Origin: Basidiobolus meristosporus CBS 931.73
Taxonomy: Eukaryota; Fungi; Basidiobolomycota
Direction: 5' to 3'
Length of the DNA stretch: 64,000 nucleotides
Assembly: GCA_002104905.1 (NCBI GenBank)
Contig: MCFE01000352.1
Coordinates: forward strand, 24,318 to 88,317
In this document: positions 3,993-64,000 of the stretch, in pieces
Numbering within the stretch: the first letter of the stretch is position 1
Layout: the number at the start of each line of letters is the position of its first letter
Position numbers and translations under genes: made by a program
The notes under the pieces: model-generated
The model's database searches: none
What the model was told of the DNA's origin: nothing
What the model saw: only the letters and a program-made list of their open reading frames with translations

Positions 3993-4584
3993 GTTAAAGG
4001 GGAGTTCAGAATTTCCATATTAGGAAATATTTTCTCAGAAAGGAAAGTGACTTCCAAATAAGGAAAAGTTACTATAAAAGTAAATAAGCCCATTAGTCAA
4101 CAGAAGGTCAGAACACTGCTGTAGAAGTGATAAACACTGCCTACAGTATATTTTGAGCCCAAGATTGAGGAAATTAGTGAAAGTTATATCTTCTATCAGT
4201 ATATCAAACTCCCAATAAACTATTTCAGTATTAGCATACTGGAAGTTGTTGTATATTGTTGATTAGCCTCTACATTGTAGAACAAGCCCCAAACTAATCA
4301 TAATACAACACAACAGAGGTAGAAAAAGGAAATACCATTTGGTAAATTGGTACAGTAGCATTATACAGAACCAGTGGCTGGCTGTCATACTGCCAAGAAA
4401 AAGCCATCAGAGTCTTGCTGTGAGGCCGTCAAAATACCGTCAAGTTTCTTGCCATATATGGCAATTGGAAGTCCTGGCCAACTGGATCCACTTAAAATAG
4501 TAATAGAGTGCTGAAAGACTGCAACAATGCCATGCAAATATTGTCACAGCACCAATCAAAAATTGTCAAGCTTTATCCCTTTAT

Positions 4585-5763
4585 TTGGCTGTAAAATTTG
4601 CAAAACACCGTCATGATCTTGTATTGCTGGAATATATCCAGAGTGTGAACAATGTTTTCCCCCAATAGTGGTGGATTCCTGACAAGTTGGACACCTTCCA
4701 ATGGTGGCATTTTCCAATATGAATGCCATGCAACTGTTAACATATTCTGGTGGCAGGATGGACTCTGGTTCATATGTTGCTGGCTGAATGATGGTTGTCC
4801 ATTTATGCCATATACATGGTAGGTTGCATCCTAGTATAATATTGGCAAGAAGCAGTAGTAGATCCTCAAAGCCCCTGTTACTGATATTAGTGGAAATGTG
4901 CCACTTTCCTAGCCCTAACATCACATCATTCACCAGTTGATGGATTACTGAGCTCATTTGACTCCATAAAATAGCCTTGGCATTTTTTTCCACAGGTGCT
5001 GTCTCATTGCATAAAGGAATTTTGCCAGGCTCATGCAGGGTACTGTTGTTAGGGAAGCTAGGCTCACAATCCATCAGTTGTCCTACATCTTCAGAGCAAT
5101 CTCTCAGTGTGCCATATTCAGAAGGCTGGGGTGAGCCTAAAGGCATCACAAACTCACCTGACTCAGCTTGAATAAGGTGACAAGTAAGGCTAGGTGCTAT
5201 TATAACTGTATCAAGCCACTGGCAAGATATTGCTGGCACAGTAGTGATTGGTGAATGGTCAAATACTGTTGTAAGAGTCTTGGAGATATTGGAAGTGATT
5301 TGGAGAACAAGTAGATAATGTGGTTTTCACTTAATGATTTATTGAATGTAAAAGTAGTAATTATACTTTTACCTGGTCTTGGCATTACAAACATGTAGAA
5401 TAGGTTAAGGAAGGTCCCAAGAATATGTGTGCAAAGTTTGGGGCTGTTTGGACAACTTTGAGAATTTTCATGTTCTGGGTACCTGGTATTTTGGTAAAAA
5501 TATTCTAAGTAAATCCCAACAAGGAATTTGGTCAGTATCCTCTAGGATTTGAGGGTAATGATCTAAGTGACTAAGATAGGTGAATATTTAGGTGGAATTA
5601 CAAAGTTTTACAACAAATACAACTTGTGTTGCAAAACACTGGCCATGATCCTTCTAATTCTTCCTATGCTGTCTGTGTGCTTTGTGGCTGAGAGGTTGGC
5701 TACAATAGCCACATGGTCTTTTTTCTCTTCACTTATGGCATTAAATCAAAGAGTCTTATCCAT
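4585..5763 (-). pseudogene. CACTA transposase copy 2, 5' part, interrupted by a Copia solo LTR and truncated
   Basis: ORF 4556-5239 is clearly homologous to the N-terminal part of 605-2581 (GEFVMPLGSPQPSEYG, GFEDLLLLLA, CVNSCMAF). ATG GAT AAG ACT start at 5763 matches copy 1. Confidence 0.85.
5267..5615 (-). mobile_element. Copia solo LTR (349 bp)
   Basis: Reverse complement of LTR 57905-58253. AATAC on both sides (5262-5266, 5616-5620) is a 5-bp TSD. The empty site is visible in CACTA copy 1 at ~585-600. Confidence 0.93.
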
Positions 5764-5977
5764 GGGACAAACAGTTTGACACTCAGCAATGTAATGCCAT
5801 TACATCACTCTTTGATCAATATGTTTACAACAGTCTAGTATTTGAGATATTGCACCTACATGAGTGTAAGATTCAATGATGACCTGCCATAATAAGTATC
5901 AGTAATAAAGTTGTGGCACCACATACACATTTATATGTAACACCCTTTGCCCTTTGGTTTGACTCACTTGCATATAT

Positions 5978-7830
5978 ATGCCACCAAAAAATAAAGCAGA
6001 GTTGTCTAGCCCCCAACTAAACCCCACCACTGACAGCAGCAGAAGAACAGTTGGACAACAGCTTGCTTTGAAATTTGGTGCAACAAGAAGGGCTACAATC
6101 AAAAAAGGCCTTGTGAACAGTGTGCCTACTGGAGAAAATGATGTAAACTCCTCAGGCTCTCAGTCAAGTAGGCAATTGGGAATCTCTTTGGAGCCACAAG
6201 CAGACCATATTGCTGAAGCAGATAAGAATGTAGCACAAGTAGCACCTTCAGTTGAAGACCAGCAAATGGTGGTTGTAACATCACCATCACCTGTATTGGC
6301 AAGTATGTTGTCAGCTCATACCAAAGCATTAATGAGGCAATTAGGTGCAGTGACTGATAAGATAGATGCAATGACCCAGAGAAATTAGGAAATAGCCCAG
6401 AAACAGGATGATCAAGTAATAGGTGTAAAGCAATGAATATATCATGTAGAAAAAGCAGTATCTTTGCTGTAAAGAAGGTACGCAAGTAGCTCAATGTCAC
6501 AGCCAAGAATTGAGCCATTTCCCAATGTAACAGCAGAGGAACACCATACACTCTTTGAAGTACACCAACAGTGCCCAAAAATAAAGCCCAGAGAGAAACC
6601 TATCACAGCCTTGGAGGGAGAAAATGTAGTATTTATACCAAGGCCTAAAAATCAAAGGACATTGAAGATCTGTGAAGCCTCTGAGTACAATGATGAAGAG
6701 TGGGCTAATATTCAAGAGGCCATCAGAAGTCTAACACACCAACACCTTAAGGCTAGCATACCATGGGACCATCAAGATCTCAATGCCAAGCAGAATGTGC
6801 CTGACTTGCTCTATGAGCATTATCCTAGATTCAAACAAGCAAATGGTTTTTGGGCCAGCATTGGTATGCTAAGAAAGTATCTCAACAATAGCAGAAACTA
6901 TCAGAGGCAGAAGGACTAGGGTACAATGGCTAAAAACCAGCAGCTTCCTCAAGAGCCTGTTACAAGCAGGGCCAAAAGCTCTAAACAATTGTCAAAGAGA
7001 CATCAGGTAGCTGGAAGAGTGCCAATAAGGGAAAAGCAGGCAGACACAGATGCACCAGCACAACATTCACCAAGGTAAAAGTGTGGTACTTCTCAAGAAG
7101 CATTCAGTCAAAGTAGCATTGAAGGACCTGGTAGTGATAAAAATAAGCAGCTACCTCAGGAGCCCATGACAGCATGGGCTGAGAGCTCAAAACAAGCAGA
7201 AAAGAAGCATCATGTTGCCTGCAGACTGCCAGCAAGAGACAAGCAGGCCAAAACAGATGCATCAGAGTAGCATTTATCAAGCAGAAAACATAGTTCAATA
7301 CAAGAAGCACTCAGACAAAGTAGCAGTGAAAGACCTGGCAGTGATAAAGGAAAAGGTAAAGGGAAAAAGTCTACCCAAGTCAGAGACAGGGATGCATAAG
7401 GAAAAAGCTGCAATTCTTGCCAATTAATGCCATAAGCCTGGACCAGACAGAATCCCATCATAGCCAAGAAGAATTAATAACAAGAAAACCGCTGTTTTCA
7501 CAAGAGCTGAAAGTGCAGCCAGTTAAGCTACACTCCAGTGAGGCCAATGAGTTTGCAGAGAAAGGCAATTTGTCTACCACAGCCTCCACATCTTCCATTG
7601 CTGACAGAGTGGAGATTCCACTGACAGACAACACAACAATGTCAAGAGCTCAGAAGGTTACCACAATGCCTTCAGTGGAATTTTGAACATTAATAGACAC
7701 ACCAAGAGGTTGCAGCACTTCTTTAAGAGCAGTGCTCAAGAAAATGCACTTGAATATTATAAGGATTTATTGCAAAGACTGGCAGATGAGGTGCTAGACC
7801 TTGCAGTGCTGGCTGAAGACCAGGACATGT
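5978..7830 (+). pseudogene. Degenerate second ORF of the CACTA element, divergent from the transposase
   Basis: ORF fragments 5978-6388, 6494-6919, 7212-7427 and 7417-7686 in CpG-depleted DNA. The 5' part is shared with copy 1 (1-~220, minus). The 6494-6919 fragment has a helical IRSL..QHL...IPW..Q...YP.F..A...WA...ML..YLNNSR segment. Right boundary approximate. Confidence 0.5.
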
Positions 7831-8394
7831 AGAAATCAGTGAATGAACAGTGGCTTAGAGCTGTAGGGTTCCCACCAAAGTCATGGAAACTGAGCATTAC
7901 AGCAGAAATACTAAATGTGTGGTGGATTTTAATGGAGTTACTTGTTGAGTGTGGGGTTGGGCTTAATGTTAGTGTAGGGTAAAGGGACCTGTGTAGGTTA
8001 ATACGATTGGCAATTAAGGTACAAGCAAAGTTTCAATGGATATAAAACAATTTGTATGCACAAAAAGTAAGAGAAATGGTTGAGTCAGGAAGTAAGGAGT
8101 CTGAAAAAGTGGCAATAGCCAATCAATGCACACAAATGTAGGAGGTGATAGAGTGTCTGGGATCAGAAAGTGTGAAAATTGGTTGAGAACCAATCAAAAG
8201 CCACTTTTGTTTTGTTGTGATGAAAATTTTGACCAAGTTTCTTGTGAAATCTGGGGTGCAATTAGTTTTTGAAGGTCTTTGCACAGTGTCCTGATGAGAT
8301 CAATACCTCTTAGTCATGGGAATTAGAATTGGCAATGGCCTTTTGACAGGATCATCACAATGATTTTCATAGGGAAACAACATCTACTTTTAGA

Positions 8395-8760
8395 TTATTG
8401 TAAGCATTGGGAAACATATGCATACACTGGAGGGGTGTTTGTCAAAAAGTGGAACACTAATATCAATTTGGCATAACTATGGCTTTTATGCACAGAGTTT
8501 GTGACAGGATTGTAGTGCCCACATTGCTAGCATAAAGCTGAGCTCATTTATCTCTGCTACTGTATCTATTCTTGACTCCCTCTTGCTCAATATGTAGAGA
8601 ACAACAGGGCATGCTTCACTTTCTAGGGGTTTCCCACAGAGCAGATGTGTGGGGAGATGGGAAGAGAAGTTAAGTTATAAGTACAGTCATATCCCTCTCT
8701 CATCCAGCATATTACCTTCAAGCATTTGATGGCTATCACAAAGCCCAAAAACCTGTGTGT
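8395..8760 (+). pseudogene. CACTA transposase fragment 3 (C-terminal region)
   Basis: Nucleotide similarity to ~2215-2550 (aagcattggga..catatg, gagtttgtgacaggatt, cataaagctga, tgcttcac, gagcagatgtgt) with multiple stops. Confidence 0.8.
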
Positions 8761-9029
8761 CAGGCTATTATGGGGGGTAAATACCACCTCCTCATTAGCA
8801 GTGTGCACTTCCACAAATACCATCTTAATAACCAACATGGTTTTTATGTTTATTGAATGTTTTATTTCTTCTCCTGGTAACATTTGGAAATAAAAAAAGT
8901 TTGTCTTGGATGCATCTTTCTAACAAAGAGCATGAAGGATGGGTGCTTTCTAGTGCTTTCAAGGCATTCTTTGCTGTTTTAGCTACTGAGCATCACATTG
9001 TCTCTTTGCCTTAACATTCCCTATAAAAA

Positions 9030-9362
9030 TGCACAAAGTTGGAATTCATTGGATTCTTGCTAGCATTCTGCTGGTATTCTGATGATGTTTCACTAGTATT
9101 CTGATGGTGCTTTACTAGTACTCTGATGGTGTTTTGTGGTGTTTTGCCAATGCTTCTGCTACATATTTTCAATTGCAATTTTTGGTGGAAGTAATGAACA
9201 CCTGATTACCAAATTTGGTATGAATTCTAGATGGCCTAGTCTCCCCCTGGGAAGAATGTCCACTTGTCTGCTTTGGAGCTATTACTTGAGATCTTGGAAT
9301 TGTCACTTCTCAGAAGGTTGGAGTTCAGTCAATATTATCATGTTATTCTGCTGGCCATTCCT
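9030..9362 (+). repeat. Unclassified dispersed repeat, copy A (copy B at ~49100-49460, minus)
   Basis: Shared blocks ttggaattcat, tgctggtatt, ttgcaattttt, ctgattaccaa, tatgaat.ctag.tggcctagtc, acttgtctg, tattctgctggcc. Confidence 0.75.
9071..9136 (+). repeat. 3 x 22-bp tandem repeat
   Basis: ctggtattctgatgatgtttca / ctagtattctgatggtgcttta / ctagtactctgatggtgttttg. Confidence 0.85.
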
Positions 9363-9369
9363 TTGATTT

Positions 9370-9945
9370 TCTTCTTAGAGATTACAGTATATGTAGTTCA
9401 AGAACTTTGTTCTTTCTTTCAGTATATTGAGGCTTCTATCCTATATTTTTACGAGGACATTCTTTGCCAATGAGAGCATCCCACCAGCCTCATTCCTGTA
9501 GCATCATATTGATCTTCACCTTGCAGACTTGCCAGTTACATCCATCCAGCTTTTGAGTAAATAGAAAATTGCAGAGAGTGACAGCTTAGGGCTCATAAGC
9601 ATCTGTAAGAGTCTTGGAGATATCTGAAGCAACTGGGCAAAAAAGCAGATTTTGTGAATTTCACAAAGTAGTGTATTACAGTTTTAAGTGGTATTTATAC
9701 TGTCCATCATCTTGCCAACTAACAAATGTAAAATATGTCATGAGAGGCCCCAAGGGCATGTGTGCAATGCTTAGGGCTGCTGGGATAGCCTTTGAGCTCT
9801 TCATGTTTTGTGTATTTGATGTTTTGGTGAGAATATATCAAGCAAGTCCCAACAAGGAATTTGGGCTGAACTCTGAGATATTAGACCATGAGCAAGGTAG
9901 CAAAGATAGGCAAGTATCTAGATATAGTTACAAAATTACAAAACA
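9370..9945 (-). mobile_element. Degenerate Copia 5' end (LTR ~9601-9945, PBS, gag N-terminus)
   Basis: On the minus strand a diverged LTR is followed by gcttatgagccctaagctgtcactctctgc and KLDGCNWQVCKVKINMMLQE*GWWDALIGKEC, matching gag at 58285. Confidence 0.85.
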
Positions 9946-10189
9946 CAGGATGCCTCTTTCTTTACTGTAATGGAGCAATCTCATGAAACTTGAGAAAGTA
10001 ACCAACCATCAAGCTTTCTACCATAGAAACAGAGTATTTAAGATTTATGTCTATCCAAAGTGTGCATTACTACTATATTTCAGGTTACTTAAAGGTGTAT
10101 GAGATTAGGTGAAGATCCAACATTTCTTACTAGAACTAGGTAAAGAGGTAATAGTCAGCATCTCATCTCAGAAGGTATAGTGTATGACT

Positions 10190-10702
10190 TAGTTAGGTTA
10201 GTTTACTGTCCCACAGATGGAATGATTGCCAATACACTCACAAGACCATTAGCTATAGACAGATCTGAATATCTTGGATCACAATGGTGCTAGTTAACAT
10301 GTATATTTAGTTGAGTGGGAGTGTTGTAAGTTCTGCAATTATACCTGGGTATTTGCCTTAGTCACTTAGATCACAGTCTACAGAATTTAGAGAAATTTGG
10401 CTAAACTCCTTGTCAGAATTTGCTTAGAATATTTCCCCACAATTGCTGGTACCCAGGACATGAAAAGAATCTCCAAGATGTCCAAACAGCCCCAAGCTTT
10501 GCACACATGCTCCTGGGACCTTCTTGAGCATTTTTACATATTTTTCTGGCCAAAGTCATGGAAAAGTGTAAATACTACTTTTGTATTCAATAAATCATTG
10601 AATGGAAATGTGATCTATTTGTTCTCCCAAACACTTCCAATATCTCCAAAACTCTTACAGTAGGTGAAGAGCCCAAAGCTGTCACTCTCTGCAATGTCTA
10701 TG
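10190..10702 (+). mobile_element. Degenerate Copia segment: RNase H end, PPT, LTR (10322-10662), PBS, gag start
   Basis: VYCPTDGMIANTLTRPL (Copia RNase H C-terminus) at ~10200-10250, then ttgagtgggag PPT, TGTTGTAAG LTR, and ggtgaagagcccaaagctgtcactctctgcaatgtcta. Confidence 0.8.
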
Positions 10703-49099: not shown

Positions 49100-49460
49100 T
49101 ACCCCTTAAGAAAAGGCCAGCAGAATACCATCGTAATATCAGCTGGATTCCAAGTTTCTCAAAACTGACAGCTCTCAATATCTCAGTTACTAGCTGTTGT
49201 ACAGACAAGTAGCCAAATTTTCCAAGAGGTGACTAGGCCAACTAGCATTCATAGCATTATTGGTAATCAGCTGCTCCCTACTTTCATCAAAAATTGCAAC
49301 TGAATATTTGAAGGAAAAACACCGGCTGAATACCAGCAAAATACCAGCTGAAATCAGATGAATTCCAAATTTGAGATTTTTCAATGGGTACCTTGGTAAC
49401 CTTGCCCTAATGTTATGAATGTGTTGCCCCTGAATGATGTAGACAAACTCTGCTTGAAAA
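49100..49460 (-). repeat. Unclassified dispersed repeat, copy B
   Basis: Reverse complement aligns with ~8960-9362; interrupted or bounded by the Copia solo LTR at 49461. Confidence 0.7.
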
Positions 49461-49800
49461 TGTTGCAAATTTCATAATTACACCTGAGTATTCCGTTAAC
49501 TTTGTCACTTTGATTGTAGTCTATGAGTCCTAGAATACCTTGCCCAAATTCTTTGATGGGATTTACCTGTAATATTTTGCCAAAGCATCAGGTACCCTGG
49601 ACACAAAAATTTGATAAGCTGCCCAAAGGTCCCCAAGCTTTGCACACTTGTTGTTGAGTCCTTCCTAAGCATATTGTAAGTGTTTGTTTTGCCAAGACTA
49701 AATAAAATTATAAATATCGCTTTTACATTCAGTCAAGTGCAAACCAAATAGTCTACTTATTCTGCCAATCACTTCCATTTTCTCCAAAACTGTTACAACA
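49461..49800 (+). mobile_element. Copia solo LTR, diverged (340 bp)
   Basis: TGTTGC...TTACAACA homologous to 57905-58253; GAAAA on both sides (49456-49460, 49801-49805) is a 5-bp TSD. Confidence 0.88.
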
Positions 49801-50736
49801 GAAAACTCACCATCTTGCAAACTGCTTAGTAACTACCAAGATATTCTTTAAGAATTATTCTAGGTCAAGAATTGATAGACTAATGTGCGATTAGGCGCTG
49901 AATTAGATATTTACGATCTGCTCAAGGACAGAAAACTCCAAGATTTGTATACTATGATCCAAGTGACTAAATCACGTGAATATTTAGGTGTAGTTACGAA
50001 ATTTGTAACAGAAACTTGCGAGCTGTCCTTGATAGGATGCATATTTGCTTCCAAATAACAAATCGCAGAGGACATAGTATTCATCAGGAGCATATAGAAG
50101 CAAATTATTAGTTTATGCAACATATATGTATATAGCCCAGAGTATTCTCACCAAGCTTGTCAATAATCCAATACGTATGTTAGCTCAATGTAGTTATTCA
50201 ATGCAATTTTATTAGTATTGACGAAGTTTGATCATCAATCTTCAACTTAACAGGCCACATTGCACATCATTATCTCTGTAAATCACTTCATTCCACCAAC
50301 ACTCAACTCTAGTAACCCGAAGTCTCACTCCACCGGGAAGAAACTATACTGATCTTCTAGTATAAACAACCGATACAAAATATAACCTATCAATTAAGAC
50401 CAGTTTACAGCCTTTTAATATTCGACGGTGTTGGAGAGAGTACTCCGGAGAAAAATGGGGCATGTAGCCCAACGTTTTGGCTAAAACGAATTTCTTTATG
50501 TATGAGAAACCGCATAAATATTAGCGGCATTATAGTTGAGAACTAGTATTGGCGGTACGGGTAGGAATTTCCCAATATGGGAGTTGAGGGGCGTAACACA
50601 TACTCTGACACTAAGATCGAGATATGAAAATGCATGCACAAAATCGTTTGCATGATGAGTGTTAAGGATATGCCGTTTCAAATAACATGTGAAACTGCGT
50701 GTGGGAATTAAATTTGTATCTCTATACAGGTTGATT

Positions 50737-53700
50737 TTAGGCAGATCCCTTGTTTTTCTTGCCCTTAGGAACTCGGGCCAGCCAGTAGATGAAGACCGCT
50801 GCGAAAATATTGAAGATGATATACACCCACATGAGGCCAAAGTTGCGCCACGCATCTTTGTAGTAGCTAGACACTGAGGCAAGGAAGGTATCCGTCGAGG
50901 AAATGGTGCAGAAGGAGCAGCTATCAGTGGCATTGGGGTCCAACAGGTAGCCGCCAGCAAAGCTCGTGTAGGTGGACATGTATTGACCGCAAGTCATGTT
51001 ACTCGGGGGCTTGAAATGTAGGTACTCAACAGCTTCGCAGACGGCACGGGTGCCGGAGACACCTGTCGAGAGCATTGCTGAGACCAGATACGTGAACGGC
51101 GACACTCGGTACATGAAAATCCAGAATCCAGGTAGGGCATCAGGAGAGGCGAGGACACCGCAGAAGATCAAGCATAAAGAGAAGAGCAAGTTGGCGATAT
51201 TACCGCCAGTTTCGGCCAGCTCGATGCCTGCGATGATCATATGTGCGAAGGTAGAGGTGAAGAGAAGGAAGGTCAGGATAAGCAGGAACATAAGGGCTCC
51301 GCGCTCACTCACAGCATTAGTGGGCTCGGCATTGCGGTACAGGCCAATGGGGTAGTACCAACAGACAAAAATGAGGACAGCCATGAGAGTATTCCAGGGC
51401 AGCTCGACAATAATATTGGCGGACATAAATGCTTGCCAGGAGTAGGTCTTGGAAGGTCTTTCACGGACCTCGTACAGAGAGCGTTGAGTACAGAAGTGAG
51501 GCATAATTTGCTGAACAAGGTTACCGAAGATGGTCATAAGCATGAAAATACTGAACATCTGATTCTGAAGTCCTTGGAGACTGTTCTGTGCATGGAAGAA
51601 GGAAAATCCAATGAACAAGGCGGTAAGGACAGAAAGAGCTGCCTTGGAGTAGATATACACAGGGGTACGCCAATATTGCGCGAAAATTCTGACCAGGCAT
51701 TCATACAGTTGAGTAGAGAAAGGAGCAGCGAATTCCTTGAAACTGTCAGGATCAGAGGCAGAGTTATCAACAGCCTTTTGGGGCAGCGTTGATTTCAGTT
51801 CGGCTAAGTGGTCTAGCACTGCTTTGTGTTCAGGGCTATCACGCCAGACAGCAGGCCAATCAATATCACTATGAGACCCAGGAGCAGCACCAATAACATC
51901 CAACATCCACTCGGCGGGGTTCGCATCAGCGGAGAGTTTAGGAGCACCGTTTCTCTCGAAGTAGCTAGCAAGGACACAGGACTTGTCTCCAATCTCTCCA
52001 AAATAGACAGTTCTTCCACCCTTGGCGAGGAAAAGTAAGCGGTCGAACCGTTGGAACAACATGGCAGATGGCTGGTGAATGGTACAGAGAATAGCCTGAC
52101 CATGCTTGGTGAGAGTATCAATCAGATCAAGAATAGACCAAGAAGTCTGACTATCAAGACCAGAGGTAGGCTCATCCAGGAAGAGGAGTAGTTGAGGCTT
52201 GGCAGCAAGTTCAACACCGATCGTCAAACGTTTACGTTGTTCAACGTTGAGACCTTCACCAGGAACTCCTACTACAGCATCTGCATACGATTCCATTCCC
52301 AAAAGCTTGATAACCTCCTCAACGTAGTCAAGTTTCTCTTGGCGAGAAAAGTGCGCAGGCTGGCGAAGGATGGCACTGAATCGAAGAGCCTCTCTGACGG
52401 TGGTAGTATAGAGATGAAGATCTTGTTGCTGCACATAACCGGTTTTTCGCTGGAAGGACTGATCGCGGAGCTTGCCATCTACCAACATCTCACCAGTTAC
52501 AACACCCATTGTAACACGTGTGGCCAAGACATCGAGGAGTGTTGTTTTACCAGCACCGGAGACACCCTGTAGAAGTTAGTAAAATATTCGAATATGATTG
52601 AAGATAAAGGAGCTCACCATAAGAGCGGTGCAGGTACCGGGCTTGACCCAACCATCAACATGGTCTAGAATGCGGCGGGGCTCATTCTTGATTTTAATAT
52701 CGTAACACACATCCTGCCAATGGAAGATTGCAGTTTGTTTCTGGATACCAGTCGAGTTTTCACCGCTATTGGGATTGCTTGGCTTCTCAACAGAAGCTTG
52801 ATGTGTGTTGGCTTCAATGTCATCAGCATCCTTCACAGCAGGCTGGTGGCCACGACGGAAGAGCAAGACTTCACCCTTGGATTTCGCCTCGGAGATGTAT
52901 TCTGAAGCAAGTAGATAGGTGCACATGAAGAACACCATAAAAGCGAACATGATGCCCAAGTTTCTCCATTTGTGGCTGTTGTAGTAACGGAAACTTTGCT
53001 CCAAATAATCGGTACCCATAACCAGATTGGAGCCGGCAACAGCGCCAACTGTAGAGCAGACCTTATTTTCAGGTAAGACACTATCGTAATTACCTCCCGA
53101 AGGAATGAAAACGGAGCACGGGAACGTCCGACCATGGAACTCGTTGACCATGAAGCTCTCGAAAGCATACGCAATAGGGTCGATATAGTTCATCCAGCGC
53201 GACCAGCCAAGCATGTTGCGGGTTGGGATAGTGAAGCCAGTGTATATGATCAGTCCCAAGATAAGGATTGCTGCTGGTACCAAAGCCTGAGACAGGGTGC
53301 GAGAGGTGGCAGCGATCGTACGGAAGATCATGGACATGGTCAATGTAGTCACAATGGAAAACAGCAAGAACACGAAGAATGCGCCTGGTTCACGTCGAAG
53401 GTTGGTCATGAAGTAAAGTGTGATGTTGAATATGATGGCATTAAGCAGCTTATACGGCATATCACAGATCATGGACGCGATGGCTTCAGCAAACGGATGA
53501 TAAAGAGCGTAGCGTGTATGTTTTTCAACGATAGGACGTTGTGCGTACAGGGTCAATATCTCGAGGGCACTGGCAAATGCGTTAAGAAGTACCGCGAAGA
53601 AAAGTAAGGCACCACGGGGATAGAAACTAGAAGTGTCGTTAGGCAAATTATAGAAAACACTTCCAATAATCAGCGCCATAATGAAGTTGCCGATCAACTG

Positions 53701-55367
53701 TGAGAGAGTTAAGCTGGCATCGCCTCTCAGACGCTGGAATCCACGTGTAACACAGAGTTTGATTTGATCCCCGACAGAAATGGTGTAAGGCGACTTGACT
53801 CGCTGGCTCTTTGCCTGCATCGCCTTACGTGATTCGATGAACTTTCCAACAGATTCCCCACCGATCGGATACGCTTGCTCGTATTCCTCGATTTCCCTCA
53901 TCAACTTGGCGTAAGCTTTACTCTTTTTCCAGGCAGCGGCAAACTCATCAGGTGTGTTGGGGACTTGACCCTCGAATCCGGGCTTGATGATACGCTCCGA
54001 GGGACTGGTAAGCGAGGTCAGGAAATCGGCAGTCGTCTGACGTTCGGGGCACTCGAATCCCATGGTTGTGAAGAATTCCCTGGCTTCATCGGTACGCCCA
54101 AAATAGATCTGACGCCCTTCGTATAAGACTGTGACTTTATCGAAGACGTCGTAGGCACTCTGTGAGGCCTGGTAGATGGCCACAGCGACTGTGGCGCCTG
54201 CATACTTAGACATCAAGCTCAACGTCTTACAAAACTCCAAGGCATTGGCACTATCCAAACCTCTGGTACTGTTATCCCAGCACTGGATGGGGCTACCACT
54301 CAGAGTGGCCTCGGCAATACTGACACGCTTCCGCTCACCACCACTGACACCACGGACAAAATCGTTACCGACTCTGGTATTGATGGTGTGTGAAAGACCC
54401 AGCATGGCCATGACGACGTCTCTCATGTGCTCTGCATACTGTTGCCTAGTGACGCCAGGAAGTCGATTACGAGGGGCTCGGGCAAGAGCCGCAAATGTGA
54501 GAGTATCTCCAACGGTTAATTGAGGAAAATGGACATCGGTCTCTGCTGTGTAGATAGCTTCACCACGAAATTGGCCTTGCATCTGCTTGACAGAGATACC
54601 TGGGTTCTATTAGTCACGAGTGGCTTCAAGTTGCTCACAAATTAGTTCTACCTTGATAGTTCAAGTGGGATTTCTCATCCAGGTGAATACCGTTCATCTC
54701 ACCGGCAATGGTCTTAAGGAAGGTTGAGCAACCACTGTGAAGAGTTAGTATTGTCAGACTCAGAATATAGACCATTGGTTACATACCTGCCAGGTCGACC
54801 GAGGACAACGAGCATCTCTCCGCTCTTGACGAGGCCGTCAAAGTTACGAAGAATCTGAATCTTCTGCTTGCCAGTGCCAGTAATTGAACGGAAAATACTG
54901 CCGATCTCAAGAACAGTATTGGCGACATCCTTCTGGTAGTCCGTGGGACTGCCATAGCCATGAATGCTGAGATTCTTGAAGGATACGCCTGCAGTTCGTT
55001 TTGGATATCTTTCTGGGTCCCGTGACTGAACAGACAGCAAGTTCTTCATCCAATTTTTGGGCTTGAAGTTAGGATCGTTGGGGTTCAATGTAGAATCATC
55101 ATTTGGTCCGATGAATGGATTTTCGACTTGATTGTCGATAGAATATCTGGTTGACTGGCGAGTCAAGTGGCGTGCAAGACGAGTAACCTCCTCTAGAATG
55201 ATCGCTTCGTTGCCTACTTTTTCTGAATTCCCAAAGACGGTATCGGCGGTGCTCGCATTGGAACCCACTTCATCTGCGAGTTGTTGTAATCCGCCACCTT
55301 CCACAGGCTCGTGGGGATTGCGTTGCTCTACGCTCAAATTAGGATTAATCGTCCCTAACAGAGACAT
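50737..55367 (-). CDS. cdr1B: Full-size PDR/ABCG multidrug transporter, Aspergillus Cdr1B/AbcG1-like (introns 54735-54786, 54600-54651, 52567-52617)
   Basis: NBD1-TMD1-NBD2-TMD2. VLGRPG|[33 protein letters not shown]|[40 protein letters not shown]-terminus [46 protein letters not shown] matches my recollection of A. fumigatus Cdr1B. The symbol means 'like'; orthology is untested. Confidence 0.9.
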
Positions 55368-56317
55368 TGTGAAGAAGAAAAAACGTTAAATTGTAGAGTG
55401 GATGAAGTACGATGCTCTCCAGGTATATCTATATATAATATATTCATCAGATCCCACTAAATGACGAAAGGCGATATCAGGGGAACGGAGAAACTAATAA
55501 TCTAATGAATGAACCAGATGGAATAATTGGGTTATGTAGATAACAAGTTGGGTCATGATACGGCGAATCGGATTGGCTGAAGTAGGAAAAAAGGGTTTTC
55601 TGTTGCGGGGGAAAACTGGAAAAATGGATTATTATAGCGGATTTCGACCGGAATTGCTTCAAATGAATCTAAATATTTGTTAAGTTACACGCGCTTTCCA
55701 CACCCGAAATGAATACCATCATTGCTTCCGAGTGCTGCCAAGAGTTCATCAAGTGCTACAGATAGTCAATTCCTAGAGTCTGATGGAAGAGAACAATGCC
55801 ATGTGGAGGGTGATGGGTGATGGGCGATGGGCGATGCGTTGTTGGTAGGTGATCAGTAATTGCCATATTGGTGTCATATCCGCAATTTTATCCCGGGTCA
55901 CGTACGACTTATTTTCCGATTATCCTTACTGCCAGCATGTGATATTCATTCGCTAAAGGAAACATCGTAGATAATGATGGGATGTCTTAAACAACACAGG
56001 TGCGTAGTTTAGCTGAAAGACCTGTTTCGTTCTCTATGTAAGCGGTGTACTATACTTTAGCTCTACAACTGACAGAGGAGGTGTGTAGAACAGACTAAAT
56101 TAGCATAGCAAATAAGATTCTCGTAATGATTACACAAATCACTCTTTATTTTTGATCGGAAACTATTTTAGTAATTCAGATCATTATAAGAGTAAAGTTT
56201 AAAGCTATTCATATTGGCCCAGGAATGGCTAAACTTTGTGTAAACATTCCAACTGTGCGGTTTATAGATAGTGTATATATTTTTGTGGTAAAAGAAATAG
56301 CCATAAGGAGTCTTGGA

Positions 56318-56335: not shown

Positions 56336-57308
56336 GCCTCTAGGTGATCAAATGCGAGCCACATTGAATTAACCTTTTGTCAATTACTCTACCAATCTGG
56401 CTTAAAATCACCCAAGAGGGATATCTTTTGATTAAGACTATTGCGTGTTTCATTGACGGTTGAGGGGGCGTTTGTATTCGTATCAGTATTTGATATAGAA
56501 AAGATAATATATGTAGCATGAAAGTATGTGAAATACAACGTCTGAGAAGGCGAGGTGTATTCTGATGCCAGCATTGATCACTGGTTGATCGTTTTGCATG
56601 CCAAACGAATTTCCCTATATCAAATTTGATTAACCATCCCACGACACTGCCTAGAAGTATATCGAGTAGTTATGACGAATGTTCAGGCAGTAGATACTCA
56701 GGTAGACTAATGTTATTGTAGCCTCCAGTTTAATTTCAAAACCCTGAATCTCCAAGGCTGCAACAAGTCTTGGTTCATGGTGCATGATTAGCTAACCGAG
56801 GGAAGAGAAAATCTCATTCATCAATGGATTATTTGTTGTACTATGGCGTTGCAGCATACTACAATGGAAAGTATACATTCTTACCAAAACATTCTATACA
56901 AGGGTACGCATATGAAAAATGTGGGGGAATAAGGTCTTGTTCATTCAATCAAATAGGTGGGTACTTGAGGTAGCTCCAGCTGTCCATTTTAAGTTACGCC
57001 TCCTTGATTCTGATATCTAACCTTCAGATGTAACATCGAAAACTGAGACATAGTCGGGGAGGAGAAGGAGAGCAGGTATATATGCGGAGTACCCCAGACT
57101 TTACAAATCAATTTGGTAAAATTTCAAAATGCTACTAAGAGGCTCCCTCAGGTAACTGAAGAAAATGATCCACGCTTTCTATTTAACTATGGTCAATTCA
57201 TACTCAATACTTCAATACCTGCTAACCATTTTAGGGACAACAGCAAGCCAGCCCAAGAACAAAAGTTTTGTAGATCTTATTAAGGCAATGGAGTAAAGCG
57301 GGATTTGC

Positions 57309-57904
57309 TGTTGTAAGAGTCTAGGAGATATTGGAAGTGATTTGGAGAACAAGTATATTATGTGGTTTTCACTTGATGATTTATTAAATGTAGAAGTAGT
57401 ATTTATACTTTCACATGGTCTTGACATAATGAGCACGTAGAGTAGGTTTAGGAAAGTCCCAAGAGCATGTATGCAGAGTTTGGGGCTCTTTGGATAACTT
57501 ATCAAATTTTCATGTTCTAGGTACCTGATGTTTTGGTGAAAATATTGTAAGTCCCAACAAGGAATTTGGTTAGTATTCTCTAAGATCTGTAAGTGACAAT
57601 CTAAGTGACTAAGTTAGGTGAATATTCAGGTGGAATTTGAATTTTACAACACTCCCACTAAACTAAATGCTCATACCAACCAGTCCTAATCTTGACTTAA
57701 GATATTCAAATTTGTCTCTAAGTAATGGATTGGTAAATGTCTGCAAAGAGTTCATCTGTAGGACAGTAAACTAAGTTAACTAAGTTATTCTATATAGCTT
57801 CACACATGTAATGAAGTCTAAGTTATATATATGCTTAGTTCTGGCATGAAAAGTTGGATTTCCACCTAATTGTATACATTCTTGATTTTCTTGAAGTAAA
57901 GTAG
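57309..57904 (-). mobile_element. Copia 3' end remnant (RNase H end, PPT, 3' LTR 57309-57651)
   Basis: Minus strand LVYCPTDELFADI, then tttagtgggag PPT, then TGTTGTAA...TTACAACA LTR. Cut at 57905 by an oppositely oriented copy. Confidence 0.82.
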
Positions 57905-59141
57905 TGTTGTAAAAATTTGTAATTCCACCTAAATATTCACCTAACTTAGTCACTTAGATCATCACCTTCAAATCCTAGAGAATACTGACCAAATTCCTTG
58001 TCGGGATTTACTTAGAATATTTTCACCAAAATACCAGGTACCCAGAGCATGAAAATATGATAAGTTGTCCAAACAGCCCCAAACTTTGCACACATGTTCT
58101 TGGGACCTTCCTTAACCTATTCTACGTGTTTGTAATGCCAAGACCAGGTAAGAGTATAAATACTACTTTTACATTCAATAAATCATTAAGTGAAAACCAC
58201 ATAATCTACTTGTTCTCCCAATCACTTCCAATATCTCCAAGACTCTTACAACAGGTTATGAGCCCCAAGCTGTCACTCTCTGCAATGTCTACTACTGCCA
58301 TTACTGGAGTTTTTCCCTCTGCCAAAAAGTTGGATGGATCTAACTACCAAGTGTGGAAGGTGAAGATGAAGATGCTACTACAAGAAAGAGGCCTTTGGGA
58401 TATTCTCATGGGAGAAGAATGCCCTCCTAAAAATGTGGGAGTGGAAGCCTTAAAGTACCAGCAGAAAGAACAAAGTGCCTTTAACTGCATTTGCCTTAAT
58501 GTTAAGGACAAATTGCTAATTCAATGCTCAAGAGCAAAAACAGCAAAGAATGCCTGGAAAGCATTAGAAGACACCTACCAGTCATGTTCAGCTGCCAAGA
58601 AGATGTATCTGAGACAAAAATTCTTTACTACAAAGATGCTGCCAGGAGAAGAAATGAAAAATCTAATTAACAGAATTACCCTGCTGGTAGATGAGATGGA
58701 ATCTGTGGGCGTACCAACTACTGATGAGTATGTGATAGTTACCATCCTGAATAGCCTGACAGACAAGTCTCAGGGCCTTGTATCAGCCCTAGAGTCCAGA
58801 ACTGAAGATTGACCTTAAATTACGTATATGGAAGGCTCCTGGATGAAGAATTAAGAAAATCAAGCACCAATAAGAAGGAAGAAGAAAATGCTTTAATAAG
58901 CAATGATAACCAACAAAGGAGGTACCCAAGACCAAACAAAGGCAACAGCAACCTATTTTGCAACTACTGCAAAAGCAAAGGACACACATCAGACCGGTGT
59001 CTCAAAAAGAAAGATAATCAGCAAAAGAAGCCTGAATATGGAAATGCTGCAACAACTGAAGATAGACTATTCATATCTGCACTAAATATGACCACAAACA
59101 AGGATTCTCAGACGTGGTATATTGACTCTGGAGCATCTCAA
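57905..59141 (+). mobile_element. Copia element B: 5' LTR (57905-58253), PBS, gag and start of protease, truncated
   Basis: TGTTG...CAACA then GGTTATGAGCCC. Gag from ATG 58285 (KLDGSNYQVWKVKMKMLL, AKNAWKALE, CNYCKSKGHTSDRC) and WYIDSGASQH. 1-nt deletion at ~58810. Homology to copy C stops at ~59141-59145. Confidence 0.93.
58254..58265 (+). promoter_or_regulatory. Primer-binding site complementary to the anticodon stem-loop of initiator tRNA-Met
   Basis: GGTTATGAGCCC immediately after the LTR; its reverse complement GGGCTCATAACC contains the CAT anticodon loop of fungal tRNAi-Met. Confidence 0.85.
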
Positions 59142-60198
59142 CACTAGACTTGTTCCATTGTACCGTGCCAGGGTGCGCGGTGCAATCCGTGGTTATAAAG
59201 AACAATTGAGTGCAATATTATAGCTACCAGAAGGCAGGATCATTCTTGGACAATTTCACACCATGCGGGATGATCTTGCACACTATGGCACAATCTGACA
59301 CGATGAGGTTAGCACGGATGATTGTGCCAACTTGGAATGTTTGCATCATGTGCGCAATCGGATACCGCTATTATGGCAGGTAAAATCTGGTATTTGGATA
59401 TGTTTCTTTAAAGTAAATGGAAATAAATGTGTATCACACTATAAACTACACTGATACTTACCATTTTGGTACCCTCACTCCAATTGGACGGTATCTCAGT
59501 GGTTAATTGGTCCAAAAGTATCCTGAAGCTGGCAGCCCCCAATTGGCTCATTGACAACTGAAAAAGCTACCTGATTTGCCATCAAATATCCCATTTTGCC
59601 CATTGAGCAAGTAAATCCCTGATCCTAGTGATTGGACAAGGTGTCATAGCTAGCACGCAAGCAATTGTGTAGGTGCAAAACAGATCCAATAGCTGCACTG
59701 GTATTACAGATGACGTATATATATGCAGGGTGTTTATTTATAGGGGTTCTGTCTCAAATGTGAGACAACCTTGATATTACTTATATCAAAAATTTGATGA
59801 TCACTGATTTGCAATGGCTCAATTTGGATCGCAAAAAAAAGGGCTGTTGGGATCATTACAAATGTGAGCAATTCAAAGCGATCGCATCATCTTCTCCTGG
59901 GTTTTTTTCTCACAGGGATTACTACTGAAGCATTTGGTAGTGGCTCACTTTGCACACCTATACTACTTCCTGGCTGATTATCATCTTGGCTACTTGTGTA
60001 TTTGTACTCAGTATGTTGCCTCCTAGTTGATGAGTGCAATGCTGCAGGTTGACCCCACTGAATTGTTCCAACTGAACCAACTGCACAGGCCTGTAGTGCC
60101 ATGCGCTGACGCGTTCTTTTACTTGCTAAGGGCTCCGGTGGTTGAGGCACTTCATGTTGGTCATCATCAGTCAGTTCACCAGAAGTAACTTGCTGATG
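59142..60198. mobile_element. Putative CACTA-type element end inserted into Copia B
   Basis: Sequence switches from Copia protease to CACTAGACTTGTTCCATTG... The opposite terminus is not seen. Confidence 0.35.
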
Positions 60199-62297
60199 TG
60201 TTGTGTTGTATTATGATTAGTTTGGGGCTTGTTCTACAATGTAGAGGCTAATCAACAATATACAACAACTTCCAGTATGCTAATACTGAAATAGTTTATT
60301 GGGAGTTTGATATACCGATAGAAGATATAACTTTCACTAGTTTCCTCAATCTTGGGCTCAAAATATACTGTAGGCAGTGTTTATCACTTCTACAGCAGTG
60401 TTCTGACCTTCTGTTGACTAATGGGCTTATTTACTTTTATAGTAACTTTTCCTTATTTGGAAGTCACTTTTCTTTCTGAGAAAATATTTCCTAATATGGA
60501 AATTCTGAACTCCCCTTTAACCTAAAGGGGTGTGTTGTAGAAGTCTCTAAAGGGGTCTTTAGACCTAAAGGGGTGTCTAAAGGGGTGTCTTTAGAGTAAA
60601 GGGGCTTCTTGCAGTGGTCTCTAAAGTGGACTTTACACTAAAGGGGTGCCTAAAGGGGCTTTTTTAGAGTAAAGGGGTTTCTTAAAGGGGTCTCTAAAGG
60701 GGTCTTTAGACTAAAGGGGTGTCTAAAGGGGTGTCTTTAGAGTAAAGGGGCTTCTTAGAGGGGACTTTTCCGACAGAAAAGTGGTAGTTTCTTGTAGAAC
60801 TTAGATTGGATTCTTGTGAGCTTTGCAGTCTCTTTACTGATGTAGTACTGATCAAAGTCAGAATACTCAACAGTGCAAGTGATGCAGGGGAAGTCTTATA
60901 ACCTTTAAACTTGTAATTGTAGTGTGGAGATTCTGGAAAGAGAGGCTCTCCCTTTATTTTTCAGCTGGGGAAGTCATATATATGAAAATTTTGAAGGATC
61001 AAAGTTTTTGGGTGATTGCGCAAGCAATACACGTGATACGAAGCTAAAATTTTGCAGTGGCGCAGATCGGACATAGGCGCAGCACCTGTGAAAATTTCAC
61101 GTGATTTGATTGGCTGGTTCAAAAGTTACACGCGATCAAAGTCACCATAGTAATCCTAGCAATAAGGCATAGTATATATAATAGTTGGACTCTTTTGGTC
61201 ATAACTCCTTAAGTACTGCTTCAAATGAGCTGTAATTTGAAACATGTGTTGGCTACTACGTGTTCTGTATGACATAATATTCTTGGGTGGATTGCTTGTC
61301 AGGGTCTGGAGCATTTGCTCTTCAAAGTTGGAAATTCTTGATCTTTCTCTTATGTGTTACAATAGCAAAAAGCAAAATAAAGAAATGAGTGCAATATTGG
61401 TTTAGAGATATTGTGGTAATGGAATACTTTCCATTACCACAAGTCTCCCCTAACTTTGAGAAATAATGCCCTCATTATTACTTCTGATATGGAACTTCTT
61501 CAATCTGTTACCAGGTTGTGTCAGTGCAAGTGGTGTACCGTCAAGTTCTGCTAGTTTGTAAGATCCATTTTTGTTTGCATGTATGATCTTGTAGGGACCT
61601 TGCCATTGCATATCCAGCTTGGATGCCTTGTTTCTTTGGCTTTTTGTGTTGTGAAGTAGTATCAACTCACCTACTTCTAACAATGTTTTTCTTAGGCATT
61701 TTTGAGCGTCAAAGTACTCCTTGCCAGCCATTCTGGATTTCTTCAGGTTTTCTATTGCATTCTGTTGCAGAGTGTGTGCTTGTTGAATCTGTTGTACTCT
61801 TGCTAGCAATAGCTCTGATGTTGTCATTGTTGGTTTCCATGGGAGGGTAAGCCAATTCTCAAAAGATATGTCTATTGGCAAAACAGCTTCATGTCCATAT
61901 ATTAAAAAAAATGGTGTATACCCTGTACTTCTTTTAACTGTGACTCTATCAGAACAAATTGCTGCATGAAAGTTATTTGCCCATTTGTTGGGTTCTTCAT
62001 AGCTAAGCTTTGCTAATGTGTTTGCAAAAGCAGAATGTCCACGTTCAACTGGTGAGTTTGCTTGTGGGTGATATGGCGTAGTATGTATAAGCTTGGTTCC
62101 ATGCTTTGTCGCTAGTGCTTGTATTTCATAAGATCCACATTCTCCATTGTCTGCAATAAGGGTGCCAGCTGAACCATGTCTGAGATATACATCTTCTTTG
62201 AGAAATCTTGCTACTGCTTTTGCATTGGCTTGTTTTAGCATTCTAGCCTCTATCCAACCAGTAAAGTTATCACAACAGTCCACCACATACTTATACC
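60199..62297 (-). mobile_element. Gypsy element 3' part: integrase C-terminal portion, PPT, 3' LTR (60199-61441)
   Basis: Integrase D(CDNFTGW)..IADNG..YHPQANSPVERGH core; TGYTPFFLIYG; WQGPYKI (GPY/F) tail. Stop TAG runs into AGGGGAGACT PPT, then TGTGGTAATGG LTR. Confidence 0.92.
61450..62297 (-). pseudogene. Gypsy integrase, 5'-truncated by Copia insertion
   Basis: The first residues of the listed ORF (MENTNFYN) come from the Copia LTR. Integrase homology begins at RYKYVVDCCDNFTGWIEAR. Confidence 0.88.
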
Positions 62298-64000
62298 TGT
62301 TGTAAAAATTCGTATTTTCCACCTAAATATTCACCTAACTTAGTCACTTAGATCATCACCTTCAAATCCTAGAGAATACTGACCAAATTCCTTGTCGGGA
62401 TTTACTTAGAATATTTTCACCAAAATACCAGGTACCCAGAACATGAAAATTCTCAAAGTTGTCCAAACAGCCCCAAACTTTGCACACATGTTCTTGGGAC
62501 CTTCCTTAACCTATTCTACGTGTTTGTAATGCCAAGACCATGTAAAAGTATAAATACCACTTTTACATTCAATAAATCATTAAGTGAAAACCACATAATC
62601 TACTTGTTCTCCAAATCACTTCCAATATCTCCAAGACTCTTACAATAGGTTATGAGCCCCGAGCTGTCACTCTCTGCAATGTCTACTACTGCTATTACTG
62701 GAATTTTTCCCTCTGCTGAAAAGTTGGATGGATCTAACTACCAAGTGTGGAAGGTGAAGATGAAGATGCTGCTGCAAGAAAGAGGCCTTTGGGATATTGT
62801 CATGGGAGAAGAATGCCCTCCTAAAAACGTGGGAGAGGAAGCCTTAAAGTACCAGAAGAAAGAACAAAGTGCCTTTAACTGCATTTGCCTTAATGTCAAG
62901 GACAAATTGCTAATTCAATGCTCAAGAGCAAAAACGGCAAAGAATGCCTGGAAGGCATTAGAAGACACCTACCAGTCATGTTCAGCTGCCAAGAAAATGT
63001 ATCTGAGAAGAAAATTCTTTACTACAAAGATGCTGCCAGGAGAAGAAATGAAAAATCTAATTAACAGAATTACCCTGCTGGTAGATGAGATGGAATCTGT
63101 GGGCGTACCAACTACTGATGAGGATGTGATAGTTACCATCCTGAATAGCCTGACAGACGAGTTTCAGGGCCTTGTATCAGCCCTAGAGTCCAGAACTGAA
63201 GATTTGACCTTAAATTACGTATATGGAAGGCTCCTGGATGAAGAATTAAGAAAATCAAGCGCCAATAAGAAGGAAGAAGAAAATGCTTTAATAAGCAATG
63301 ATAACCAACAAAGGAGGTACCCAAGACCCTACAAAGGCAACAGCAACCTATTTTGCAACTACTGCAAAAGGAAAGGACACACATCAGACCGGTGTTTCAA
63401 AAAGAGAGATTATCAGCAAAAGAAGCCTGAATATGGAAATGCTGCAACAACTGAAGATAGACTATTCATATCTGCACTAAATATGACCACAAACAAGGAT
63501 TCTCAGACGTGGTATATTGACTCTGGAGCTTCTCAACACTTTACACACCAAAAAGAACTTTTTACCCAATATCAAGAAATTCCAATTAAGAAGGTTTTCA
63601 TGGGTGACGATAGAACACTTGATGCAGTGGGAGAAGGAACTATCCAAGTAAACCTTAGAAGCAGTGAAGGAAGCCATACACTGACCTTTAAAGAGTACTC
63701 TATGTACCAGAAATAGCCAAGAACCTACTCTCTGTAAGCAAGGCCACAGCAGAAGGACTCAGTTTCAGTTTTGACAATTCTGGATGCAGGATCACTGATC
63801 AAAATGGTGCTCATATTGCTTCAGGCATCAGAGATCAGAACCTATACAAGTTGACTTATATTCCATCATATCTGGAAGCCAATATAAGTAACTTAAATGA
63901 AGAAACACCAATGCTTTGGCACAGGAGATTTGGACACATCAATTTTGATTATTTGTGCAAAATGATCAAAGATCAGCTAATTTCTGGAGTGAAAATTGAT
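62298..64000 (+). mobile_element. Copia element C: 5' LTR (62298-62647), PBS (62648-62659), gag-protease-pre-integrase, runs off window
   Basis: Gag ATG 62679, CCHC CNYCKRKGHTSDRC, WYIDSGASQHF. After a 1-nt deletion at ~63693: VLYVPEIAKNLLSVSK ... LYKL ... LWHRRFGHINF. Confidence 0.95.

Follow-up and report, generated by a model that had tools for sequence, protein, structure and literature searches.

An AbcC-type multidrug pump gene of Basidiobolus meristosporus, very probably acquired from a mould of the Aspergillaceae

The contig MCFE01000352.1 of Basidiobolus meristosporus CBS 931.73 (assembly GCA_002104905.1) was analysed over a stretch of 64,000 nt (positions 24,318 to 88,317), which is referred to here as the window and supplies all of the coordinates given below. 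The window forms the final 64 kb of the contig (88,317 bp), and sequence from the assembly matches it with 100% identity over 21,285 bases (9998–31282). On the minus strand of the window, at 50737–55367, lies a gene for a pleiotropic drug resistance (PDR) pump of the ATP-binding cassette (ABC) transporter type. This is very probably an AbcC-type pump gene of the Aspergillaceae that was transferred, together with its introns, into the ancestor of B. meristosporus and Basidiobolus ranarum and has been kept there under strong purifying selection. Horizontal acquisition from a Eurotiomycete had been proposed in an initial interpretation of the DNA letters (the sequence-only reading), and the proposal is supported by the nesting of the pump in phylogenetic trees, the sites of its introns, its linkage to host long terminal repeats (LTRs), its presence in a sister species and the recovery of spliced contigs. 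The same reading had taken an EML gene and a U12 intron to argue against an ascomycete host, and the identity of the strain confirms that the host is not a member of the Dikarya; an EML gene is annotated there, and the segment 30595–30663 has U12-type AT-AC features. Full-text literature searches, which do not cover most subscription journals, returned no earlier report of an AbcC transfer into Basidiobolus.

The pump protein and its relatives

The gene model rebuilt from the window sequence is composed of four exons and three introns (Table 1). Its product of 1491 aa has zero internal stops and is identical, with the same coordinates, to the annotated protein P0496, a "putative ABC transporter" of B. 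meristosporus CBS 931.73, so that model and annotation both uphold the initial description of an intact PDR transporter with three introns of 51–52 nt. All three introns are of the GT-AG type with CTAAC or CTAAT branch sites. The Pfam domains follow one another in the order ABC_trans_N, ABC_tran, ABC2_membrane, PDR_CDR, ABC_tran and ABC2_membrane, which is the layout of a complete full-size PDR (ABCG) transporter: a reverse topology, with a nucleotide-binding domain (NBD) preceding a transmembrane domain (TMD) twice over, together with ABC_trans_N and the PDR_CDR extracellular loop. The ATP sites are asymmetric as is usual for PDR proteins, since NBD1 is degenerate (a Cys replaces the Lys of Walker A, and Walker B is also affected) and the Walker A and B motifs of NBD2 are canonical, while a motif check identified the NBD2 signature as degenerate. 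The full-size PDR pumps Pdr5 of Saccharomyces and Cdr1 of Candida share this architecture and asymmetry, although the yeast-lineage relatives found, Bfr1 of Schizosaccharomyces pombe and a Saccharomycopsis protein, are only ~42–44% identical to the Basidiobolus pump. B. meristosporus retains 805 (98.8%) of the 815 columns that are invariant in 15 Aspergillaceae orthologues, and B. ranarum retains 803. The coding sequence is CpG-rich, as had been noticed, with an observed/expected ratio of 0.80 against 0.02–0.27 in the adjacent transposon zones.

The closest relatives of the pump are found in the Eurotiales. It is 81.6% identical over 1490 aa to AbcC of Aspergillus fumigatus (also Cdr1B or AbcG1; Afu1g14330, ABCC_ASPFU), a protein that falls in the 90% cluster of P0482, and 79–81% identical over its full length to many Penicillium and Aspergillus proteins, with a ceiling of ~81% for any sequenced Eurotiales protein. 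Exon 4 alone (609 aa) has best matches of 83–87%, which cluster look-ups assigned to named Penicillium, Aspergillus and Monascus. The likeness to Eurotiales Cdr1B/AbcG1 had been said to extend into the normally variable N-terminus, and this is confirmed by the Aspergillus wentii protein, which starts MSLLGTLNPN. The pump shares with A. fumigatus AbcC and its Aspergillaceae orthologues (named "ABC multidrug transporter C" in Penicillium) the domain order and the combination of a degenerate NBD1 with a canonical NBD2. Among basidiomycetes, the best relative is a Rhodotorula protein that is 57% identical and represents the 50%-identity cluster of the pump; the ten best 50%-cluster representatives that were looked up are all from Dikarya or unnamed. 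A Penicillium orthologue has, among its best 120 full-length relatives, just two from outside the Dikarya: P0496 itself and its B. ranarum counterpart P0497.

In the FastTree phylogeny of 137 full-length sequences, the two Basidiobolus proteins pair with each other and adjoin Penicilliopsis zonata within the clade formed by Aspergillus and Penicillium AbcC, to which Thermoascus, Paecilomyces, Rasamsonia, the Cdr4-type paralogues and the Onygenales do not belong. The pump belongs to the AbcC/Cdr1B orthogroup, being inside the clade that holds ABCC_ASPFU and apart from the Cdr4-type paralogues. A quick tree of 45 taxa under a posterior mean site frequency (PMSF) model (LG+C20+F+G4) groups Penicilliopsis, Basidiobolus, Aspergillus and Penicillium with an SH-aLRT value of 96, and the LG+F+G4 tree of 28 taxa supports the same split with 93.9/89. 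Both of these trees place the B. meristosporus and B. ranarum pumps as sisters with 100% support. The cleanest design for the approximately unbiased (AU) test comprises 24 taxa, with AbcC orthologues from the Aspergillaceae and the Thermoascaceae/Trichocomaceae and the Cdr4-type clade as the outgroup. Here, monophyly of the Eurotiales orthologues to the exclusion of Basidiobolus is rejected (delta log likelihood (lnL) 32.4, p-AU 0.0007), and the control constraint with Basidiobolus inside these orthologues is the maximum likelihood tree. In a separate AU analysis, a constraint that unites Aspergillaceae, Thermoascaceae and Monascus (c2) is rejected at p = 0.001, a value that is confounded by the other rearrangements the constraint forces. 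The nesting among Eurotiales AbcC/Cdr1B orthologues, by which the sequence-only reading would stand or fall, is thus recovered in all three trees and by the AU test.

Vertical descent would require an ancient PDR paralogue that evolved unusually slowly and was kept only in Basidiobolus and the Eurotiales. In formal terms, the root of the unrooted tree can be set on the Basidiobolus branch, and the AU test does not reject a long outgroup branch there: uniting Basidiobolus with Rhodotorula against all Pezizomycotina costs a delta lnL of 12.4 (p = 0.10), as the long Rhodotorula branch merely slides onto that of Basidiobolus. Such a root, however, makes the AbcC proteins of Aspergillus and Penicillium sister to an assemblage of Penicilliopsis, Thermoascaceae, Onygenales and Cdr4-type paralogues, which contradicts the species tree, and it needs losses in nearly all other fungi. 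An identity of ~80% would also have to persist across the split between Dikarya and Zoopagomycota when other Dikarya relatives are at 42–57%, and vertical descent must further contend with three exactly shared intron sites and with an orthogroup synteny that is conserved only in the Aspergillaceae. This explanation is very improbable.

Two other placements in these trees are unusual. The PDR protein of Rhodotorula toruloides (P0241, 1506 aa) joins the Eurotiales sequences beside Rasamsonia through a very long branch, which reflects either long-branch attraction or another odd history. Proteins from Rutstroemia (P0548, Leotiomycetes) and Malbranchea (P0542, Onygenales) nest with high support in the Cdr4-type paralogue clade of Aspergillus and Penicillium, and this hints at further PDR transfers among ascomycete orders or at hidden paralogy.

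Intron sites, locus and linkage to the host genome

The intron sites of the pump were compared with those of annotated orthologues by exact exon mapping and are expressed as codons of the window protein with the phase in brackets (Table 1). Two sites, 221(1) and 882(0), match P. zonata in both position and phase, and 882(0) also matches abcC of Aspergillus udagawae. The remaining site, 193, coincides in A. wentii and in an Aspergillus tanneri paralogue with a stop-containing insertion that tblastn places exactly between GRPG and SGCST. Both of these homologues also show a break in the tblastn alignment at site 222, and A. tanneri has another at 882/883. The Aspergillaceae homologues as a whole exhibit a patchwork of at least eight intron sites, and all three Basidiobolus sites are among those used. 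This recurrence provides support for the donor group that is independent of the trees, and the presence of introns at donor-group sites indicates that genomic DNA rather than a processed transcript was transferred.

In the donor group, abcC occupies a conserved locus with Pan3 and a UBX gene upstream and usually a ferric reductase gene downstream, as seen in Penicilliopsis, A. udagawae, A. wentii, Penicillium ochrochloron and two Logan contigs. The Basidiobolus pump does not lie in a Pan3-UBX-abcC(-ferric reductase) neighbourhood, and neither tblastx nor blastn detected similarity between the flanks of the gene in the window and the Aspergillaceae flanks. The lack of donor synteny fits the insertion of a single gene and speaks against the reverse transfer, from Basidiobolus into the Eurotiales. 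Such a reverse transfer draws on the root ambiguity only; the two Basidiobolus proteins form one terminal lineage within a large radiation of Eurotiomycete sequences with several paralogue clades, and the AbcC orthologues hold their syntenic locus across the Aspergillaceae, so that this direction is scarcely credible. The lack of synteny is what would be expected for a single transferred gene, and it makes the Basidiobolus pump a xenologue and not a positional orthologue of Aspergillaceae AbcC. The Basidiobolus copy differs from its Aspergillaceae counterparts in its non-Dikarya host, its position outside the Pan3-UBX-abcC block, its host-like codon composition and its upstream region, where a search for the CGG-N12-CCG (AtrR-type) element found none.

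The pump is physically linked to Basidiobolus DNA. Logan contigs of run X1, which is probably from the source strain, cover 49450–52760 and 52803–55449 with k-mer depths of 206 and 199, respectively. The first contig crosses the whole of the solo LTR downstream of the pump and continues beyond 49450, and the second extends ~1.9 kb beyond 55449 towards the upstream LTR. A misjoin had been named as an outcome that would overturn the proposed transfer, and it is countered by these short-read contigs, which carry the pump and the host LTR together. The idea that the gene is a contaminant, or an Aspergillus or Penicillium fragment misjoined into a Basidiobolus contig, draws on the position of the pump between repeats, where misjoins occur, and on the break in the X1 contigs at 52761–52802. 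However, the contigs that join pump and LTR have a depth at or above that of the other long host contigs, the LTR family is specific to Basidiobolus and has several copies in the window, and the GC content at third codon positions (GC3) of the pump matches the host. The pump in the independent assembly of B. ranarum has diverged to 85% DNA identity, shares the introns and has LTR-family fragments upstream, two further datasets hold the pump at 88–95% identity, and full-length identity to sequenced Eurotiales proteins stops at ~81%. Contamination and mis-assembly have next to no probability and are excluded for practical purposes.

Two long host contigs of X1 that touch LTRs have a k-mer depth of ~100 against ~200 for the pump contigs, a difference that could stem from haplotypes collapsed in one case and separated in the other, or from an identical second copy. 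The X1 contigs also differ from the assembly at full depth at the single positions 49896, 50058, 50182 (1 nt missing), 52586 (intron 3) and 53037 (exon 3), and these differences are either assembly errors or alleles.

The search for the pump in sister species, which the proposed transfer had called for, was positive in B. ranarum and in two further Basidiobolus datasets (organisms C and D). The B. ranarum orthologue P0497 (GCA_040143965.1) exhibits 90.4% protein and 85.4% DNA identity, contains the same three introns and shares ~310 nt of upstream sequence with B. meristosporus, and fragments of the same LTR family are located further upstream. Run X5 (organism D, which has the same species label but comes from a different study) contributes a genomic contig of 7.3 kb that is 88.7% identical across 50734–55273 and retains the introns. 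Run X3, from the same study as X1, contains contigs that are 100% identical to the exons, one of which skips introns 1 and 2 exactly, and the contigs of run X4 (organism C, 90–95% identity) skip all three introns. The X3 and X4 contigs are cDNA-like, and from their spliced form we infer that the pump is expressed. The gene has the attributes of a bona fide horizontal gene transfer (HGT): linkage to host DNA, presence in several host lineages, spliced cDNA-like contigs and compositional amelioration.

The two Basidiobolus species could in principle have acquired the gene independently, or passed it between them after one acquisition. The genes that flank the two loci differ, and both copies are among mobile elements. 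A tnp2/CACTA-transposase-like sequence (L007:7346–7677) lies just downstream of the B. ranarum pump and is related to the window ORF at 605–2581 (matches at 2111–2443), which puts the pump among mobile elements in both species. The two copies are nonetheless fully supported sisters, and they have in common all three introns as well as the upstream non-coding sequence, which is unmatched in the Aspergillaceae flanks. The divergence of the two pumps (90.4% protein identity, dN = 0.049, dS = 0.62, dN/dS = 0.08) is in line with that of the native orthologue pair encoded by the Dus gene of the window, which is 85.4% identical between the species. Separate or secondary acquisition is unlikely, and the sequence divergence is compatible with one acquisition before the split of the two major Basidiobolus clades, which are described in a preprint (bioRxiv 10.1101/2025.03.31.646025).

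Several points weigh against the transfer or limit how finely it can be described. A tree with Basidiobolus immediately outside the crown of the Aspergillaceae is only 1.5 lnL worse (AU p = 0.49), so the exact branch point is not fixed, and the position of the root is not fixable by distant outgroups. With an Onygenales outgroup, the AU test gives p = 0.052, a result confounded by the nesting of Onygenales sequences within the Thermoascaceae. The trees were built without named PDR proteins of the Zoopagomycota or Mucoromycota, and native Basidiobolus PDR proteins were also left out. The B. meristosporus and B. ranarum loci share only the gene and the ~310 nt upstream, and a comparison of the two found no synteny of the insertion site. 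Finally, no record identifies runs X3 and X4 as RNA, and their contigs carry no information on expression level. Because a placement just outside the crown is not rejected while exclusion from the Eurotiales clade is, the protein phylogeny traces the putative donor as far as the stem or base of the Aspergillaceae, but not to a genus.

Age, proposed course of events and significance

The codon composition of the pump resembles that of its host. GC3 is 0.54 for the pump, 0.52–0.60 for native ORFs of the window and 0.64–0.72 for Aspergillaceae orthologues, and codon usage correlates at r = 0.76 with the native ORFs, 0.76–0.80 with Aspergillus and Penicillium orthologues and 0.60 with P. zonata. 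In the trees, ~0.2 substitutions per site separate the Basidiobolus tips from the base of the Aspergillaceae, a distance similar to that of the Aspergillus and Penicillium orthologues, which suggests that the transfer took place near the time when the Aspergillaceae radiation began. The transfer is ancient and not recent: it predates the split of B. meristosporus and B. ranarum, and the codon composition has drifted to host values.

In the proposed course of events, the donor would have been a mould from the stem or base of the Aspergillaceae, within the Eurotiales, and a single gene of its AbcC (= Cdr1B / AbcG1) orthogroup would have passed as genomic DNA, introns included, to the ancestor of the B. 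meristosporus and B. ranarum clades. There the gene may have landed in transposon-rich DNA and either acquired or retained a promoter functional in the host, after which its codon composition would have drifted to host values and strong purifying selection would have maintained it.

The pump probably exports hydrophobic xenobiotics, azoles included, across the plasma membrane in an ATP-driven manner, a function predicted from orthology. Cdr1B/AbcC of A. fumigatus is the efflux pump most consistently tied to azole resistance that is not due to Cyp51A (PMC8131930). Its link to the voriconazole minimum inhibitory concentration comes from expression in pdr5-deficient yeast and from deletion in resistant isolates, and the protein is described as having a broad substrate range, as being regulated by AtrR and as being orthologous to CDR1 of Candida albicans (PMC8131930).

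Transfers into Basidiobolus have been described before, and those of Tabima et al. 2020 (PMC7466969) resemble the present case in the recipient genus and in the acquisition of genes that deal with small molecules. They differ in having bacterial donors and in being mostly intron-less secondary-metabolism genes, whereas the pump has a fungal donor and has retained donor-type introns. That study screened Basidiobolus for bacterial donors only and took flanking "fungal genes" as a sign that a gene belongs to the host; genes of fungal affinity counted as native. A 2025 preprint on 19 new Basidiobolus genomes mentions bacterial HGT only (bioRxiv 10.1101/2025.03.31.646025).

The transfer of a transporter gene between fungi is not unprecedented in kind, and the present case is well supported. 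It is unusually clean in its combination of donor-type introns, flanking host transposons, presence in both major Basidiobolus clades and purifying selection. It also stands out because the gene crossed from the Dikarya to an early-diverging fungus, because its introns lie at sites used in the donor group and because the orthogroup is clinically relevant. To our knowledge, few transfers from Dikarya into early-diverging fungi are well documented. Basidiobolus is a human pathogen, and the pump, being the xenologue of the A. fumigatus pump that is foremost in non-Cyp51A azole resistance, is for this reason a candidate for explaining the antifungal susceptibility profile of the genus. A tentative extension, which we consider possible but rather doubtful, is that the pump is one of several detoxification genes gained from co-habiting ascomycete moulds of dung, soil and the herptile gut, perhaps raising tolerance to azoles or mould toxins. 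As part of the same extension, the event might serve as a relative time constraint because the donor and recipient branches are both defined; it would relate the age of the Aspergillaceae base to that of the Basidiobolus crown and, if true, would link a node of the Dikarya to a poorly dated early-diverging lineage.

The window around the pump

The positions of the features at the pump locus are listed in Table 1, together with the domains and motifs of the protein and the intron sites that were compared.

Table 1. Features of the pump locus, domains and motifs of the protein, and intron sites of the orthologues compared (window coordinates for DNA features, residues for domains and motifs, codons of the window protein with phase in brackets for intron sites)
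Feature	Position	Strand	Remarks
Exon 1	54787..55367	-	Start codon, variable N-terminus, ABC_trans_N, first part of NBD1 Walker A (GRPG)
Intron 1	54735..54786	-	52 nt, phase 2, after codon 193; spliced out in X3 and X4 contigs
Exon 2	54652..54734	-	83 nt
Intron 2	54600..54651	-	52 nt, phase 1, after codon 221; spliced out in X3 and X4 contigs
Exon 3	52618..54599	-	Remaining NBD1, TMD1, PDR_CDR loop, linker, start of NBD2
Intron 3	52567..52617	-	51 nt, phase 0, after codon 882, directly before NBD2 Walker A; spliced out in one X4 contig
Exon 4	50737..52566	-	NBD2, TMD2, stop codon
Probable promoter and 5' untranslated region	55368..55680	-	Conserved with B. ranarum: CCAAT-containing block and TATA-like block
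Solo LTR, host Copia family	49461..49805	+	Diverged, 73–76% identical to other copies; 0.9 kb downstream of pump stop codon; shares X1 short-read contig with pump 3' half
LTR, same Copia family	57304..57653	-	1.9 kb upstream of pump start codon; followed by Copia elements at 57.9–64 kb
ABC_trans_N	64–150		Pfam
ABC_tran	174–333		Pfam; two stretches, best given
ABC2_membrane	500–709		Pfam; two stretches, best given
PDR_CDR	720–810		Pfam
GRPGSGCST	190		ATP-site motif
VSGGE	306		ATP-site motif
WDNSTRGLD	329		ATP-site motif
GVSGAGKTT	883		ATP-site motif
LNVEQ	988		ATP-site motif
12-residue motif	1009		ATP-site motif
Introns, Basidiobolus (both species)	193(2), 221(1), 882(0)
Introns, P. zonata	221(1), 882(0), 1351(2)
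Introns, A. udagawae abcC	372(0), 486(2), 568(0), 882(0), 986(1)
Introns, P. ochrochloron	372(0), 986(1)

The native genes of the window encode Dus, importin-13, a mitochondrial carrier, a C2-HELP-EML protein, LOR and GH16. The best relatives of the Dus ORF outside Basidiobolus are ~45–61% identical and come from chytrids, zoopagomycetes, mucoromycetes and animals, and the sequence search returned no Dikarya among its best 120 matches. This pattern is that of a vertically inherited gene of the Basidiobolus host, in contrast to the pump. A Protein Atlas look-up had given animal-like neighbours for the Dus ORF, a misleading result that was corrected by the sequence search. The segment with U12-type features lies on the plus strand inside the importin-13 gene, begins ATATCCTT, contains CCTTGAC near its 3' end and terminates in AC, all of which are hallmarks of a U12-type AT-AC intron.

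The pump is the sole gene between its two nearest LTRs. Besides these, copies of ~345 nt from the same host family are found at 57903–58254, 62298–62648, 5266–5615 and ~10069–10659, in agreement with the earlier observation that a host Copia LTR family brackets the pump and recurs at 5–10 kb. The upstream block at 55368–55680 showed no similarity to the Aspergillaceae flanks. Copia-type gag and integrase domains are located at 58–63.7 kb, with gag present twice (58057–58812 and 62652–63716) and an integrase fragment on the opposite strand (61450–62322). Within 57903–62648, two LTRs that are 97–98% identical stand ~4.4 kb apart, and the arrangement resembles that of Copia copies in tandem or inserted into one another, of more recent date than the solo LTR beside the pump.

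The transposon zones of the window (4000–10000 and 57300–64000), which include Copia elements and the tnp2/CACTA-like ORF at 605–2581, have a CpG observed/expected ratio of 0.13, falling to 0.02 in 2-kb windows, against 0.81 in genic DNA. The same zones exhibit an excess of TpG and CpA (1.34) with TpA unchanged. The loss of CpG in these repeats is decay of the methylation/deamination type that targets repeats, unlike classical repeat-induced point mutation (RIP), which enriches TpA.

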